Positions 1 through 31,041 of a DNA stretch of 64,000 bases are shown piece by piece. The notes under the pieces were generated by a model, which did no database searches, had not been told where the DNA came from, and worked only from the letters and a program-made list of their open reading frames with translations. The stretch covers positions 1 through 64,000 of IMG/VR virus record IMGVR_UViG_3300005965_000002. One strand, 5' to 3'. Made by a program: the position numbers and the translations under genes. The number at the start of each line of letters is the position of its first letter. Position 1 is the stretch's first letter.

Positions 1-147
1 TTTCTCTTTAACAATCTTTTCAATATCGCTTAACTTAGCTTTAGGATTTTCCTTAAATCTATTATACGAAAATCTAATTACATTATTAAATTGCCTAATG
101 TAATCTTCGTTAATGTTTATTTGTATTTTAAATTTATAGGTTACCAT
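1..147 (-). CDS. N-terminus (runs off window) of a possible TnpB/IS607-OrfB-like protein
   Basis: MVTYKFKIQ...EDYIRQFNNVIRFSYNRFKE resembles the N-terminal helix of TnpB-like proteins; only 49 codons visible. Confidence 0.4.
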   Translation of the reverse strand, partial: MVTYKFKIQININEDYIRQFNNVIRFSYNRFKENPKAKLSDIEKIVKEK

Positions 148-351
148 AAAATATCTTTAAATGTTAAGATTTTATTATTATTTATACAATTATATTTTTA
201 CATAAAATTACAAATAAATTAAAATTATTTATCACCAGTTATAACACTTAATAGAATAGTACTGAATCTCAAACTTGTCAATTGGAATAATTAGAGTATC
301 CCAGAATTCAAAAGTATCGTTTTCGAATCCGTGATAGGCAGTTTCAGACAT

Positions 352-2610: not shown

Positions 2611-2924
2611 TTATATCTTACCGTGCTTGTTTTCCCATTCTTCCCGGAACCTTCTAGCGTACTTATTGACCCATTCTTCACAAGCTTCTTCATCTAGGTC
2701 TCTTCCTTCTTGTTCACTTCTGATCCATTTATACTTCTCGATTTCTTCTATTTCATCCTTCATAAACTTGAAATATTTGCTGTCAGGATTAATAGGAGAA
2801 GGAGGGAAGCTGTCGTCCTTACAGCATATACCAGTAGATCCCTTTAAACACGGCATCGATACTCCCCTGTATATTGGTGCCTGAGGGGGGACTTGAACCC
2901 CCACACCTTTCGGCACTAGATCCT

Positions 2925-3716
2925 CTTACTACTCCTAGTTTCCCAGGCCCTCTCGGTTGTAGTCTGGACTATATCTTCACCCTCAGTTTTACCTGTAGGG
3001 GCCTGACGTATAGTCTCTGAGGGGTCACTAAGACTTCCCTGCGGATTGCCGATTATTATCCATACAGATTTTTACTAATAATCTGCTAATAAGTTGGCAG
3101 ACTCATAGTACTGTAGGCTTTACGGGTTTCCCGCATATAGTCAGGTTTCACGCTCCCAATTACTTGAAAGGTGCTCAGGATATGAAGAACATTTCAAAAG
3201 AACTTCTTAAAAAATACTATCTACAGCAAAAACTTACACCCTATAAAATAGGAGAACTCTTTGGAGTTAACCACAAAACTGTAAGGAGCTACTTAAAAAA
3301 ATACCAAATACCCATGCGTACTGCCTCAGAATATAATTTTTTAGCCCGTAAGAGTCATACAAGACCCGACAAAAAAAAGTTACAAAGTAAATTATCCATT
3401 GCCGGGCATTCTGCTTTTCTTTGTGAAGGTTGGCATACAGAAAAAACAAATGCTTTTTATTTCTGTAATACAGATCCCGCCCTCATTCTTTTGGTCCTTA
3501 ATACGCTAAAAAGGATTTATCAAGTTAAAAGAATCGCTATACAAATAATAGCTAAAGAAAAAACAGGAACTAAAAAATTATTTGATATCTTTCCAGAAGC
3601 CTCCTTTATTGTTGAAAAAGATAGAAAAACTCCTATAGTTCGCCTTAGGTGTGGGGGTAAAAATCTTGCTAGAGAAGTAATAGAAAATTCTTACAGAATA
3701 GTTACTTCACTTTACT
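2925..3716 (-). ncRNA. group I intron (792 nt) in anticodon of tRNA-Leu(TAG)
   Basis: Inserted after U34, ends in G; core elements TCAGAGACTA and AAGATATAGTCC present. Confidence 0.9.
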
Positions 3717-3718
3717 AA
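3182..3718 (+). CDS. HTH + LAGLIDADG-like homing endonuclease encoded antisense inside the intron
   Basis: N-terminal HTH (LTPYKIGELFGVNHKTVRSYL), then AFLCEG...F.NTDP.LI motif; ATG at 3182 preferred over TTG at 3164. Confidence 0.65.
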   Translation: MKNISKELLKKYYLQQKLTPYKIGELFGVNHKTVRSYLKKYQIPMRTASEYNFLARKSHTRPDKKKLQSKLSIAGHSAFLCEGWHTEKTNAFYFCNTDPALILLVLNTLKRIYQVKRIAIQIIAKEKTGTKKLFDIFPEASFIVEKDRKTPIVRLRCGGKNLAREVIENSYRIVTSLY

Positions 3719-3802
3719 GTCTAGCGTGTCTGCCGTTCCACCACTCAGGCATGTAAACCTCGTTAACAATATACTTATCTGTTTTTACTATTTAAACTAC
3801 AG

Positions 3803-4094: not shown

Positions 4095-4167
4095 TGGAGC
4101 TGCGGGGGTTCAAACCCCGGACCTCAACGCTGCCAGCGTCGCGCTCTCCCAACTGAGCTACCGCCCC
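4095..4167 (-). tRNA. tRNA-Ala(GGC)
   Basis: G3:U70 pair; loop CTGGCAG; tail CTA rather than CCA. Confidence 0.88.
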
Positions 4168-4205
4168 GGAATTTATAGTAGGCACAATTATGAATGAATT
4201 ATTAA

Positions 4206-4278
4206 AGCCGGTGGAGGGATTCGAACCCCCGACCAGAGGTTTACAAAACCCCTGCTCTGGCCACTGAGCTACACCGGC
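4206..4278 (-). tRNA. tRNA-Thr(TGT)
   Basis: Cloverleaf; loop TTTGTAA; no CCA. Confidence 0.92.
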
Positions 4279-4328
4279 ATTAAAAATATTCTATTATGGA
4301 AAACACTAAGGAAGGAATCAAGCCTATT

Positions 4329-4550
4329 TTATTTTTTGGACTTTGGCTTAATCAGTCCTTCTTCCATCTTTTTCTGCATTTCTAATTTTCTTTTGGCCGA
4401 TTCTCTTTGTACACGTTTTACAATACACGGCTTTTCGAATCTTCTTCTTTTCTTCATTTCAGAAAGAATGCCGCCATTATCAATTACTTTGGAAAAGCGC
4501 CTGATAGCTTTTTCAATATTTTCGTTATCTCTTATTCTGATGCCATTCAT
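4329..4550 (-). CDS. rpsU: ribosomal protein bS21
   Basis: ENIEKAIRRF...GILSEMKKRRRFEKP signature. Confidence 0.9.
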   Translation of the reverse strand: MNGIRIRDNENIEKAIRRFSKVIDNGGILSEMKKRRRFEKPCIVKRVQRESAKRKLEMQKKMEEGLIKPKSKK

Positions 4551-4854: not shown

Positions 4855-5715
4855 TTAGAATTCTACTAATTGGGTTTTCATTTTTCTTACAGTAGCATGG
4901 TGAAAAAGCTTTCTAATAGCTCTTTCTTTTATCTGTCTTACTCTTTCTCTTGTAAGATTAAGCTTATCTCCAATTTCTTGGAGATTATAGCAATGTCGGT
5001 CATATAGGCCAAAATGAAGCCTACATATCTCTTTTTCTCTTTCAGAGAGTACCTGCAACAACTCAGTTACTAATTTTTGAGTTGTCTCCGCGTGAAGAAA
5101 TTCGTTTGCAGTAATCGTATCTTGATCCTCCAGTGTATCTTTAACGGTTGCGTTTCCTTCCCCGATAGGAGAATCTATTGAGATATAAGGAGTATACATA
5201 GAATGAAGCCATTGGTACTCACTATAGCTATCGATATTAAGCTCAGCCATTATCTCCGAGGGTTCCGGTTCTCTCCTAAGCTCCTGCTGTAGCTTAATAA
5301 TGGCTTTCTTATACTGATCAAAAATAGGCACTCTGTTAATAGGTATCCGAGCAATCCTACTTTGGTTTGCTAACGCTTCTAAAACCTGCTGCCTAATCCA
5401 CCAGACAGCATAAGATATAAATTTATACCCTTTTTTATAATCAAACTTTTTAGCTGCCTTAATAAGTCCGATGTTTCCGATGTTAATCAGATCTTCTAAA
5501 GGCAACCCTTGATGCTGGTAAACACTTACTACATTTATCACAAAACGGAGGTTACCAAGAATTAGTTCTTCCTCGGCCTTTTTATCCCCTTTTGCTATAC
5601 GAATTGCCAGGTTTTTCTCTTGTTCATAGCTAAAATTTTTATATTTACTTATATCACAAAAGTAGATATCTAAAAGAGAATTACCGGTATCTGGTTTACT
5701 TTTTGTATTTTTCAT
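4855..5715 (-). CDS. sigma-70 (RpoD/RpoS-like) factor lacking region 1.1
   Basis: NLRFV, GNIGLIKAAKKFD, FISYAVWWIRQ, TRERVRQI; start moved to ATG 5715 because the upstream part of the track ORF is a tRNA. Confidence 0.92.
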   Translation of the reverse strand: MKNTKSKPDTGNSLLDIYFCDISKYKNFSYEQEKNLAIRIAKGDKKAEEELILGNLRFVINVVSVYQHQGLPLEDLINIGNIGLIKAAKKFDYKKGYKFISYAVWWIRQQVLEALANQSRIARIPINRVPIFDQYKKAIIKLQQELRREPEPSEIMAELNIDSYSEYQWLHSMYTPYISIDSPIGEGNATVKDTLEDQDTITANEFLHAETTQKLVTELLQVLSEREKEICRLHFGLYDRHCYNLQEIGDKLNLTRERVRQIKERAIRKLFHHATVRKMKTQLVEF

Positions 5716-5726
5716 AGTATAAAAAA

Positions 5727-5817
5727 TGGCGGAGGGTGAGGGACTCGAACCCCCAACACCCGAAGGTGACCGGTTTTCAAGACCGGAGCGGTCAACCAAA
5801 TTACGCTTTAACCCTCC
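5727..5817 (-). tRNA. tRNA-Ser(TGA)
   Basis: CCGGT-CTTGAAA-ACCGG, long variable arm, CCA. Confidence 0.92.
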
Positions 5818-11731: not shown

Positions 11732-12406
11732 TAAAGAATGATTGTTTTGCTTTCTCTACAAGTTTCTTCCAAACGGTTGTACTCAGTTTTGGGTACTGTC
11801 TGTGTGCGGTACTGATGATATGAGGCGATACCCATTCCAAGAAGAAGGATGCTGAGGAGAGCAGCACTTATGAATAAGCCATCACCTGACGTGGCTGCTA
11901 AAGCTACTGAAAGAATGACAATAAAAAAGAGGAAAGAGATAACTATTACTAAAAAAATAGGTAGCATACTAGTCCTTTTTTGAGGCGTCGCGCTTATAGA
12001 TATCACATTTAGATATACCACATTTGCTGATGCCCTCTAGTGTTCTTTGTTCCAGGTCAGAATAGTCTTCCCACGGAATAATCGGGGTAAATGATTCTTT
12101 GGCTTTCTTCCCCATCTCAGTACGGCTTTGAATATTTTCTATGTTAGGCTTATCCAATGTTATTCCTTTACTTCTCCTGAAAATATGTGATTGTCGCATT
12201 TAACTACATCATCTTGACAGGTATCTTTTAGTACCGGATGATGCCCTCTAAATTCAGGATTGCTCATGCATTTAGGCCATTTATCAGTATGGTCACACAT
12301 AATGCATAAATTAGGTAATGTAGCTAATTCATTCATAAATACTTCCTGAAAAAATGGTACTCGGGACGAGATTCGAACTCGTACGGGGTTACCCCCAATG
12401 GATTTT

Positions 12407-13174
12407 CTTACTACTCTTGCTTTCACAAGCCGCTATAACGTTGTAGTCTGGACTATATCATCTCCTTAGTAAAACCTTAGGAGGGACGTGCATAGTCTCT
12501 GAACCTTCCCCATTTTAAAGGGGCTCGGCTGCTGATTACCCAATCTCTGATAGTTTTTTAACTTTCACACCCGCTGTTTTCAGCCATGTTGTAGTCATCT
12601 GAGCTATAAGGGCTTTCCAGCAATTCTCGTCCTGCTCACCTATTGATTTCTCAATAAGGGCTCTTTGATCCCTTATAAAAAAGTGAAGCCTGCCATGCTG
12701 CATCCTACTAATAATTATCATGTTACTTAAAGAGTTGTCTTTTATATCACCGTTAATATGATGAATAACTTCGTTATAAGAAAGTTTTCTCTTCAAAACT
12801 TGTTCAGCTATTACCCGGTGTATATCTTTAGAACTTCCTTTAAGTTTATTGTAATTACCAGTAGCATTGTTACCTATTTTTGAGACTTTTCTATAGCATT
12901 CTAAACAGTACTTTTGGTCTTTGTGGTTTAGCTTAATTTTTTTAGTGCATAAAACACAAAATCCCCAACCGTATCTATTTTTGTAAGCCGCTCCTCCTTT
13001 TTGAAGATAAAAATATTTACGTCTTTCTAGGTAACAAGGATTACAGTATCGTCTTCCTTTTGTTGGCGGGATCTTTTTACATTTAACACAAAGCCTCTCC
13101 ATAATAACTCCTTTTATTGGAAGGACCAATATTAGGAGATTATGGTGGACACAACGTGTCAAGTGTAAAAAACA
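12407..13174 (-). ncRNA. group I intron (768 nt) in anticodon of tRNA-Leu(TAA)
   Basis: After U34, ends ...AGTAGTAAG; TCAGAGACTA and GATATAGTCC core elements. Confidence 0.9.
12536..13102 (-). CDS. intron-encoded HNH homing endonuclease with zinc fingers
   Basis: HRVIAE..L.R.L...EVIHHING...DN...N motif; CxxC pairs; start at ATG 13102 with RBS GGAG. Confidence 0.85.
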   Translation of the reverse strand: MERLCVKCKKIPPTKGRRYCNPCYLERRKYFYLQKGGAAYKNRYGWGFCVLCTKKIKLNHKDQKYCLECYRKVSKIGNNATGNYNKLKGSSKDIHRVIAEQVLKRKLSYNEVIHHINGDIKDNSLSNMIIISRMQHGRLHFFIRDQRALIEKSIGEQDENCWKALIAQMTTTWLKTAGVKVKKLSEIG

Positions 13175-13268
13175 AAGTCCACAGTGTCTACCATTCCACC
13201 ACCCGAGCATGTCAAAGATCATCTCATATGAATATACTCCTTTGATTATTCTAATTAAAGTAAAAAAG

Positions 13269-30807: not shown

Positions 30808-30968
30808 TTTAATACTCTACTTTATCCGTCTCAAAGGATATACCAGTTTTTTTGACGATAACAGTTACCTGTATATGCTTTAAAGGGATTGGTAAAGGCG
30901 GTAAATAAATGTCTTTTCTATACGGATCATATCTTTTAATCGAAGGAACGAATGGTAACAGTTTTAAG

Positions 30969-31041
30969 CGCCCCCGAAAGGATTCGAACCTTTGACTGAC
31001 TGGTTTTAGGGACCACTCCTCTACCACTGAGGTACGGGGGC
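30969..31041 (-). tRNA. putative amber-suppressor tRNA (anticodon CTA), Trp-like anticodon arm
   Basis: TGGT-CCCTAAA-ACCA; perfect acceptor GCCCCCG/CGGGGGC; G73; C33. Confidence 0.7.

Follow-up and report, generated by a model that had tools for sequence, protein, structure and literature searches.

Group I introns that carry homing endonucleases are standard textbook material, and to our knowledge the classical introns in transfer RNA (tRNA) genes for tRNA-Leu(UAA) contain no open reading frame (ORF). The tRNA-fMet intron of Synechocystis was reportedly described by Bonocora and Shub in 2001 together with its endonuclease, I-Ssp6803I, a PD-(D/E)xK enzyme with a sense-strand gene. The endonuclease of this cyanobacterial intron targets the anticodon region in tRNA genes that lack the intron (cited in PMC3984707). 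In phages, all introns known by 2014 were located in protein-coding genes, despite the many tRNA genes that phages carry (reviewed in PMC3984707). Endonuclease genes antisense to a group I ribozyme have been documented for nuclear introns in ribosomal DNA (rDNA), for example Dir.S956-2 (PMC3679873), and a free-standing endonuclease gene, segB of T4, is found in a phage tRNA cluster (PMC13096335). A route by which a free-standing endonuclease gene might enter an intron has been proposed (PMC3984707; PMC6083498). The element considered here splits a tRNA-Leu(UAG) gene in a phage genome and contains an ORF on the opposite strand. It lies in the first 64 kb (the window, meaning the whole stretch of 64,000 nucleotides [nt] that was analyzed) of the 258,580-bp IMG/VR virus record IMGVR_UViG_3300005965_000002, which is approximately 55% complete per CheckV. 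The best explanation of the locus as a whole, which we consider likely, is a mobile intron with an antisense homing endonuclease gene in a phage tRNA-Leu(UAG) gene.

The source of this DNA is a huge phage of a salt lake, and matching DNA is present in hypersaline-lake and microbial-mat metagenomes. Among the phages in GenBank, no protein match to the ORF at 3182-3718 was found by tblastn, and DNA matches were confined to the neighboring tRNAs. The comparison presented below is drawn from 21 distinct loci, of which 14 are intron-borne (the window, L013, L023, L010, L014, L007, L008, L021, L019, L004, L025, L026, L027, and L028) and 7 are free-standing (L003, L024, L006, L009, L017, L030, and L029).

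The split tRNA-Leu(UAG) gene

The cloverleaf of the host tRNA was read by hand from its two exons. The 5' exon consists of the acceptor strand GCCUGAG, a 3-bp D stem, and the 5' strand of the anticodon stem, CUAGA, followed by C32, U33, and U34; the same type of 5' exon is present in the 13 further intron loci. The 3' exon continues with A35, G36, G37, and A38, followed by UCUAG, a variable arm of 13 nt, the T arm, the acceptor strand CUCAGGC, A73, and CCA. Joining of the two halves (3750-3717 and 2924-2875) yields a class II tRNA-Leu(UAG) in which all seven acceptor pairs are Watson-Crick. Because the gene is split, ARAGORN, whose 37 tRNA calls in the window are all of minus-strand genes, made no call for tRNA-Leu(UAG) at 2875-3750. 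The phage has four further tRNA-Leu genes.

The host gene is tRNA-Leu(UAG), with the anticodon U34-A35-G36 split between U34 and A35, at each of the 14 intron loci. Metagenome contigs whose own tRNA-Leu(UAG) genes are free of introns match the 3' exon as far as position 2924 and then proceed with the complement of ...GCGCUAGACUU; intronless genes are thus continuous exactly at the predicted junction, CUU-AGGA. The original prediction, which had named tRNA-Leu(TAG) as the host gene and CTT-AGGA as the expected junction, is supported in both respects. In the intronless gene, the sequence CTAGA-CTTAGGA-TCTAG of the anticodon arm is a natural palindrome (5+7+5) centered on the insertion site.

The intron and its ribozyme

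The assignment to group I, for which the original prediction had suggested a covariance-model check, is borne out by a match to the full length of Rfam model RF00028 (positions 1-253, minus strand) that scores 79 bits (E = 2e-18), above the gathering score of 50. The 13 other intron loci score 55-79 bits on the same model, and the intron lengths range from 789 to 817 nt over all 14. The intron of the window begins with A (+1) and ends with G (the omega-G at 2925). Every one of the 14 introns has G as its last base and is preceded at the 5' splice site by U.

The internal guide sequence was located in an alignment that covers the homologous introns over their 3' 260-300 nt. It is part of a conserved block, (A/U/C)CUGAGC, that lies 0-8 nt past the complement of the ORF start codon and is followed by P2 and then P3. 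Helix P1 is formed by the guide bases GAG (3176-3174) with C32-U33-U34, including a U34.G wobble at the splice site, while the guide bases CCU pair with A35-G36-G37 to form P10. The P10 bases are CCU in 9 of the 14 loci and ACU or UCU in the remaining 5. Pairing between the guide and base 32 shows perfect covariation across the set, with C32 accompanied by GAG in 11 loci and U32 by GAA in 3. Compensatory changes were also observed in all pairs of P2 except the loop-closing one (alignment A3, columns 23/28). When the 14 cores were analyzed with RNAalifold, compensatory double changes were present in 32 of 57 predicted pairs, covering P2, P3, P5, P5a/b, P6, and P9. P7, a pseudoknot, was left out of this pair scoring, and both of its strands are invariant in the alignment. 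The covariation of the guide and of these 32 pairs indicates that the ribozyme is under selection, and this signature of selection for structure argues for an intron that is competent for splicing. As part of the overall explanation, and with the same likelihood, the intron would be mobile and would belong to the cyanobacterial tRNA-Leu type (IC3-like) of group I.

Two other placements of the 5' pairing were considered and rejected. A guide candidate within P5, GAGUCUG (a 7-bp match at 3098-3104), is absent from the close relative L013 and all other loci. The P1 drawn by Rfam at 3239-3200 is a forced local fit within the ORF, since the true 5' splice site lies 480 nt further upstream.

Rfam detected two group I introns in the window (3239-2944 and 12677-12433), both on the minus strand. 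The second interrupts a tRNA-Leu(UAA) gene 9 kb away, and its core shares 74% column identity with that of the tRNA-Leu(UAG) intron; the position of P2 and the GAGCC block also agree between the two layouts. Loop L1 of the second intron holds a sense-strand HNH endonuclease gene (13102-12536, Pfam HNH_3), and its last ~45 codons extend into the core of the ribozyme. L021 likewise has a further group I intron (4151-4454, minus strand, 50.6 bits on RF00028), 1.7 kb from its tRNA-Leu(UAG) intron.

The antisense gene in the P1 loop

A gene on the opposite strand enlarges the P1 loop of the intron to ~540 nt and is flanked by the two strands of P1. This ORF has 178 codons on the plus strand, with the ATG at 3182; as originally described, it is antisense to the intron, and its TAA stop lies over U33, U34, and the 5' splice site. 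In 12 of the 14 intron loci, as worked out by hand, U33, U34, and A(+1) supply the stop codon through their complement. At the remaining two, L004 and L028, the ORF is in another frame and runs antisense through the entire 5' exon, which accounts for the C-terminal tails of these two proteins. At its other end, the start codon is 2 nt from the guide CCUGAG. A possible Shine-Dalgarno sequence, AAGGTG, is the complement of a conserved segment just 3' of the guide, and in the other introns the conserved GAGC(A/C)CUU gives AAGG on the opposite strand, 9-13 nt before the ATG. One DNA segment is thus both splice site and stop codon, and another both guide and translation start region.

The combination of intron and antisense ORF recurs in the 13 other independent loci and is therefore no chance product in the window. 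The gene is antisense to its neighbors at all 21 loci; in the 11 with gene calls, all neighboring genes are on the opposite strand, and in the remaining loci the same is true of all tRNAs and introns. The antisense orientation may simply derive from a free-standing ancestor. It frees the ribozyme from ribosome traffic and makes the timing of the gene independent of that of the tRNA.

Several of these proteins end in tails that are no more than antisense read-through of the neighboring tRNA (L009 and L017) or of the 5' exon (L004 and L028). Examples are ...GGEGVEPSD and ...KPDAVTNFATVA, and gene callers will list such tails as protein.

The endonuclease-like protein

A word search retrieved 38 homologues of the ORF product, 175-201 amino acids in length with outliers of 168 and 233, under uninformative names. 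Their alignment contains 21 invariant residues, among them the block C-E82-G83-W-H85-T86 and N96, R148, G158, and G159. An AlphaFold model made with the family alignment has a predicted local distance difference test (pLDDT) score of 92.5; in a single-sequence run the C-terminal domain remained below 50, and that run was not used. The predicted layout, for which structural matches were also found, comprises an N-terminal helix-turn-helix (HTH) region at about residues 1-50 and one LAGLIDADG-fold domain at 57-178. In the model, three helices (6-40) and a linker are followed by a helix at 70-82 ending in E82-G83, past which the strands and helices occur in the order of a LAGLIDADG domain with one extra helix. 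The acidic residue and glycine expected at the C-terminal end of the interface helix of such a domain are invariant in 38 of 38 members. E82-G83 occupies the place where LAGLIDADG enzymes have their catalytic Asp/Glu.

Sequence searches captured little of this protein. Pfam gave a weak N-terminal HTH match (HTH_23) under the Pfam cut-off, the first 55 residues match PHROG families annotated as HNH endonuclease (E = 5.8e-7), and NUMOD1 matched weakly in 6 members. The Pfam models LAGLIDADG_1, LAGLIDADG_2, LAGLIDADG_3, and WhiA matched none of the 38 at E values up to 1. A profile search against PDB sequences returned no match for the family, Foldseek against the PDB none below E 0.04, and for the C-terminal domain the Pfam, PDB sequence, and ESM Atlas feature searches were all empty. 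As Pfam and PDB sequence matches are absent, membership in the LAGLIDADG group rests on the fold, the invariant Glu-Gly, and the context. The original view of the ORF as HTH-LAGLIDADG-like is in line with the predicted fold and with Glu82-Gly83.

Prediction of two copies of residues 57-178 gave a score of 0.75 as compared with 0.01 for the best control. Of 30 proteins whose structures were solved as pairs, 20 reached this mark, as did 1 of 23 that were solved as single chains. The three runs have at least 97% of their contacts in common, and the pLDDT of the partner is at least 85. The symmetric interface in these models consists of residues 68-82, 96-107, and 171-178, with helix 70-82 packing on itself, and the protein is predicted to be a homodimer through this helix. 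We infer a homodimeric homing endonuclease whose likely target is the intronless tRNA-Leu(UAG) gene. With the palindromic anticodon arm as its expected target, the enzyme is a simple candidate for homodimeric LAGLIDADG site recognition.

A phage motif upstream of the antisense gene

The original prediction also included a copy of a phage motif inside the ribozyme region, pointing at the ORF, and TAATAATCTGCTAAT is indeed present there on the plus strand (3076-3090). The generalized motif, TAATAATCNNNTAAT, occurs 13 times in the 258.6-kb genome as compared with 0.23 copies expected under a first-order model. A same-strand ORF of at least 50 codons is found within 110 nt downstream of 12 of the 13 copies, as opposed to 43% of random positions, and nearly all copies are 26-105 nt upstream of such an ORF. 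Nine of the 13 are within the tRNA-rich first 64 kb. TAATAATCNNNTAAT is a real gene-upstream signal and probably represents a phage-specific promoter class. A gene for a sigma-70-family factor of the phage is located 1.1 kb away (4855-5799, minus strand). Sites of the generalized motif include 6465(+), 7813(-), 19677(+), 24335(+), 43766(-), and 45996(+), and a degenerate copy, CCATAATCTCCTAAT, occurs at 13145-13131, where it precedes by 28 nt the start codon of the HNH gene that the second intron carries.

The copy that faces the antisense ORF is on the strand opposite P5c, the only part of the core with variable length (0 to ~40 nt among relatives). At L013, P5c carries the compensatory pair UCUAC/GUAGA; the change falls on free positions of the motif, and the motif is kept. 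L023 retains the motif with one mismatch. It is plausible that the motif provides the antisense ORF with a promoter of its own.

Relatives and movement of the gene

The free-standing relatives retain an association with the same tRNA. In six of the seven (L003, L024, L006, L009, L017, and L030), no more than 76 nt separate the gene from a tRNA with anticodon UAG, on either side of it; the seventh, L029, is not beside such a tRNA. In a maximum-likelihood protein tree, intron-borne and free-standing genes are interleaved, with five changes of state by parsimony, at least two of which are forced by well-supported branches. Intron-borne L004 and free-standing L030 are sisters (support 89/84, below the starred level) and have the flanking genes SLT and HAD_SAK_2 in common. 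The gene has evidently moved between intron-borne and free-standing states while staying with the same tRNA gene, as expected for a homing endonuclease that targets that gene. The pattern suggests that endonuclease and intron were joined, or separated, more than once.

The tRNAs(UAG) beside three of the free-standing genes (L003 2848-2925, L009 3027-3103, and L017 2075-2152) are 77-78 nt long with a short variable arm. In this they are unlike the normal bacterial class II tRNA-Leu, and their amino-acid identity is unclear.

A core-pattern scan of IMG/VR yielded 95 loci, of which four are in tRNA-Leu(UAG), each ~800 nt long and with the antisense ORF. Introns of the same core on the IMG/VR contigs L055, L065, L068, L091, and L123 are followed by apparent tRNA 3' halves that start with GTTAA and continue into a T arm; these introns are apparently in phage tRNA-Asn(GUU) genes, inserted before G34. 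L039 may contain a further tRNA host. Introns in phage tRNA genes do not seem to be a rarity among metagenomic viral contigs.

Proposed mechanism and alternatives

Under the proposed mechanism, the guide CCUGAG in the minus-strand transcript would pair with bases 32-37 of the anticodon loop, U34 forming its wobble with G at the splice site, and the ribozyme would excise itself, leaving a normal tRNA-Leu(UAG). The endonuclease gene would be transcribed separately, most likely from the phage motif in the dispensable P5c hairpin. The product, a homodimeric enzyme with an HTH region and a LAGLIDADG fold, would cut the intronless tRNA-Leu(UAG) genes of co-infecting relatives at the palindromic anticodon arm, and repair of the break would copy intron and gene into the cut allele.

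Several results weigh against this explanation. No RNA run was found to contain this DNA, which leaves splicing and the antisense transcript as predictions. The scan of 95 IMG/VR loci, conducted with a narrow pattern, did not find an ORF-less intron in tRNA-Leu(UAG), and the metagenome contigs matching a 3,801-nt query included no intronless and no ORF-less allele of this phage lineage; homing is for these reasons inferred rather than seen. WhiA illustrates that the same fold together with an HTH can belong to a DNA binder that does not cut. The motif-to-ATG distance of 92 nt is also longer than the 26-64 nt of most other copies. This last point bears on the alternative that the ORF does not use the motif at 3076-3090 as its promoter, the motif being a part of P5c or a chance copy and the ORF being transcribed from elsewhere or poorly expressed. 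The overlap of the motif with base-paired P5c agrees with such a view, as does a sigma-70 consensus scan that found no plus-strand site upstream of the ORF (three plus-strand matches are inside or beyond it). Nevertheless, with a genome-wide expectation of 0.23, a chance copy less than 100 nt before the sole neighboring plus-strand gene, and aimed at it, is improbable; the motif is kept in L013 and L023, and the HNH ORF of the second intron has its degenerate copy 28 nt upstream. We regard a role other than promoter as the less probable option, although one that deserves serious consideration.

The remaining alternatives are all unlikely to differing degrees. The fixed antisense orientation might itself be functional, making endonuclease expression and tRNA-Leu(UAG) maturation mutually exclusive in a timed switch, with the intron also acting as immunity. 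Mutual exclusion is proposed because the endonuclease messenger RNA is fully complementary to L1 of the pre-tRNA and transcription is convergent; if true, it could operate through transcriptional interference or double-stranded RNA. As immunity, the enzyme could cut the same-arm intronless tRNA-Leu(UAG) genes of rival phages, and perhaps of the host, while the split copy of the phage itself would be spared. Metagenome contigs show that intronless tRNA-Leu(UAG) genes occur in the same communities. We consider this switch and its accompanying immunity a speculative proposal with a small chance of being correct. It is likewise improbable that the protein is not a nuclease but a maturase or a WhiA-like DNA-binding regulator that aids intron folding or controls transcription of the tRNA cluster; E82-G83 at the end of the interface helix is invariant throughout the family, the seven relatives without an intron are not expected of a dedicated maturase, and the scatter of intron-borne and free-standing states over the tree is the pattern of a mobile gene. 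Finally, the intron could be a decaying relic in a tRNA-Leu(UAG) pseudogene, with only the endonuclease gene maintained, given that splicing is not directly evidenced and that the phage has its four other tRNA-Leu genes. The extensive covariation from P1 to P9 over 14 loci, the perfect cloverleaf exons, and the retention of omega-G and the U.G wobble in all loci make this highly improbable, and a functional mobile intron with its antisense endonuclease gene is preferred.

Features of the locus and the window

The coordinates of the intron locus and of the second split tRNA gene are collected in Table 1.

Table 1. Features of the tRNA-Leu(UAG) intron locus and of the second intron in the window
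Feature	Position	Strand	Remarks
3' exon of tRNA-Leu(UAG), A35 to CCA	2875-2924	-	Read directly from the sequence
Group I intron, 792 nt	2925-3716	-	RF00028; boundaries from cloverleaf and intronless contigs
Ribozyme core P3-P9 with extended P5a/b/c arm	2925-3152	-	Rfam alignment
Promoter-like phage motif TAATAATCTGCTAAT	3076-3090	+	92 nt upstream of ATG; inside the ribozyme, pointing at the ORF
P5c hairpin, UCUGC/GCAGA	3082-3101	-	Motif on its other strand; length-variable region of alignment A3
P2 hairpin, 7 bp, GUAA loop	3153-3170	-	Directly 3' of the guide; alignment A3
Possible Shine-Dalgarno sequence AAGGTG	3167-3172	+	9 nt before ATG; suggested by sequence only
Internal guide sequence CCUGAG	3174-3179	-	In a block conserved throughout the 14 introns; complementary to bases 32-37 of the anticodon loop
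Antisense ORF, 178 amino acids and TAA	3182-3718	+	Fills the P1 loop (L1)
TAA stop of the ORF	3716-3718	+	Complement of intron +1 (A), U34, and U33
5' exon of tRNA-Leu(UAG), G1 to U34	3717-3750	-	34 nt; read directly from the sequence
Second split tRNA, tRNA-Leu(UAA)	12355-13208	-	5' exon 13208-13175, 3' exon 12406-12355
Group I intron of tRNA-Leu(UAA), 768 nt	13174-12407	-	RF00028, 67 bits

Other tRNA-like features of the window and of related phages deserve mention. A tRNA with a CUA anticodon (30968-31041, minus strand) is an amber suppressor, Pyl per the ARAGORN label, and similar CUA tRNAs are close to the homologous locus in L004 and L020. Recoding of TAG was considered on account of this tRNA and rejected, as reading TAG as sense adds no more than does any other stop; with the standard code, long-frame coverage past the tRNA region is already 96-100% in most of the genome and 0.91-0.92 in two 20-kb bins. 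ARAGORN also reported a "tRNA-Ala(CGC)" at 5727-5817 (minus strand, 91 nt) that is odd or doubtful, with its anticodon at position 28 and an Rfam score of 31 bits; it overlaps the start of the sigma-factor ORF. In two related huge phages, a transfer-messenger RNA gene is located less than 2 kb from the intron locus (L007 374-690 and L025 2574-3001).

Comparison with known systems

The arrangement had been called unusual in the original prediction, a fair description in light of the 2014 review of phage introns (PMC3984707). A search of the open literature, of incomplete coverage, found no later report of a phage tRNA intron and no description of the present arrangement. What appears new or rare here is the use of a phage tRNA as host gene, an endonuclease family that is invisible to sequence models and whose HTH and LAGLIDADG fold emerge via structure prediction only, a gene that is always antisense and fitted exactly between the strands of P1, and the presence of one protein family both in the intron and free-standing by the same tRNA gene. 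Such a two-state family offers a natural series on how endonuclease genes and introns come together.

The ribozyme resembles that of the classical tRNA-Leu(UAA) intron in its insertion between U34 and A35 and in the order of the 5' splice site, the guide GAG(C), P2 with a GNRA loop, and P3-P9. It differs in that the host anticodon is UAG (14/14 loci), the setting is a phage, L1 contains a 540-nt gene, and the guide also pairs with G36 and G37 (P10 CCU/AGG). With the tRNA-fMet intron and I-Ssp6803I it has in common an endonuclease-encoding group I intron in a tRNA anticodon loop, whereas the protein described here has a predicted LAGLIDADG fold with an HTH and is encoded antisense, in a phage. 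In introns of the Dir.S956-2 type, the endonuclease gene also lies opposite the ribozyme strand in a peripheral loop and needs its own transcription. Those introns are in eukaryotic nucleolar rDNA and have His-Cys box enzymes, in contrast to the phage tRNA and LAGLIDADG fold found here, where the antisense state is fixed family-wide (21/21 loci).

The protein is predicted to share with I-CreI, I-MsoI, and I-CeuI a single domain of the alpha-beta-beta-alpha-beta-beta-alpha type and dimerization via a first helix with an acidic residue and Gly, and a palindromic target is expected, as for those enzymes. It has no detectable sequence similarity to them and contains an additional N-terminal HTH and an additional inter-strand helix, and its motif is ...AFLCEGWHTEKT, not the LAGLIDADG of I-CreI-type enzymes. 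The seven free-standing relatives in phage tRNA clusters recall the free-standing phage endonucleases found beside their target ("collaborative homing"), namely SegB of T4 and F-CphI, the latter by the psbA intron site. SegB is a GIY-YIG enzyme and F-CphI is EndoVII-like, whereas here one family occurs in both states at the same gene, a pattern that fits the entry route proposed for free-standing endonuclease genes (PMC3984707).

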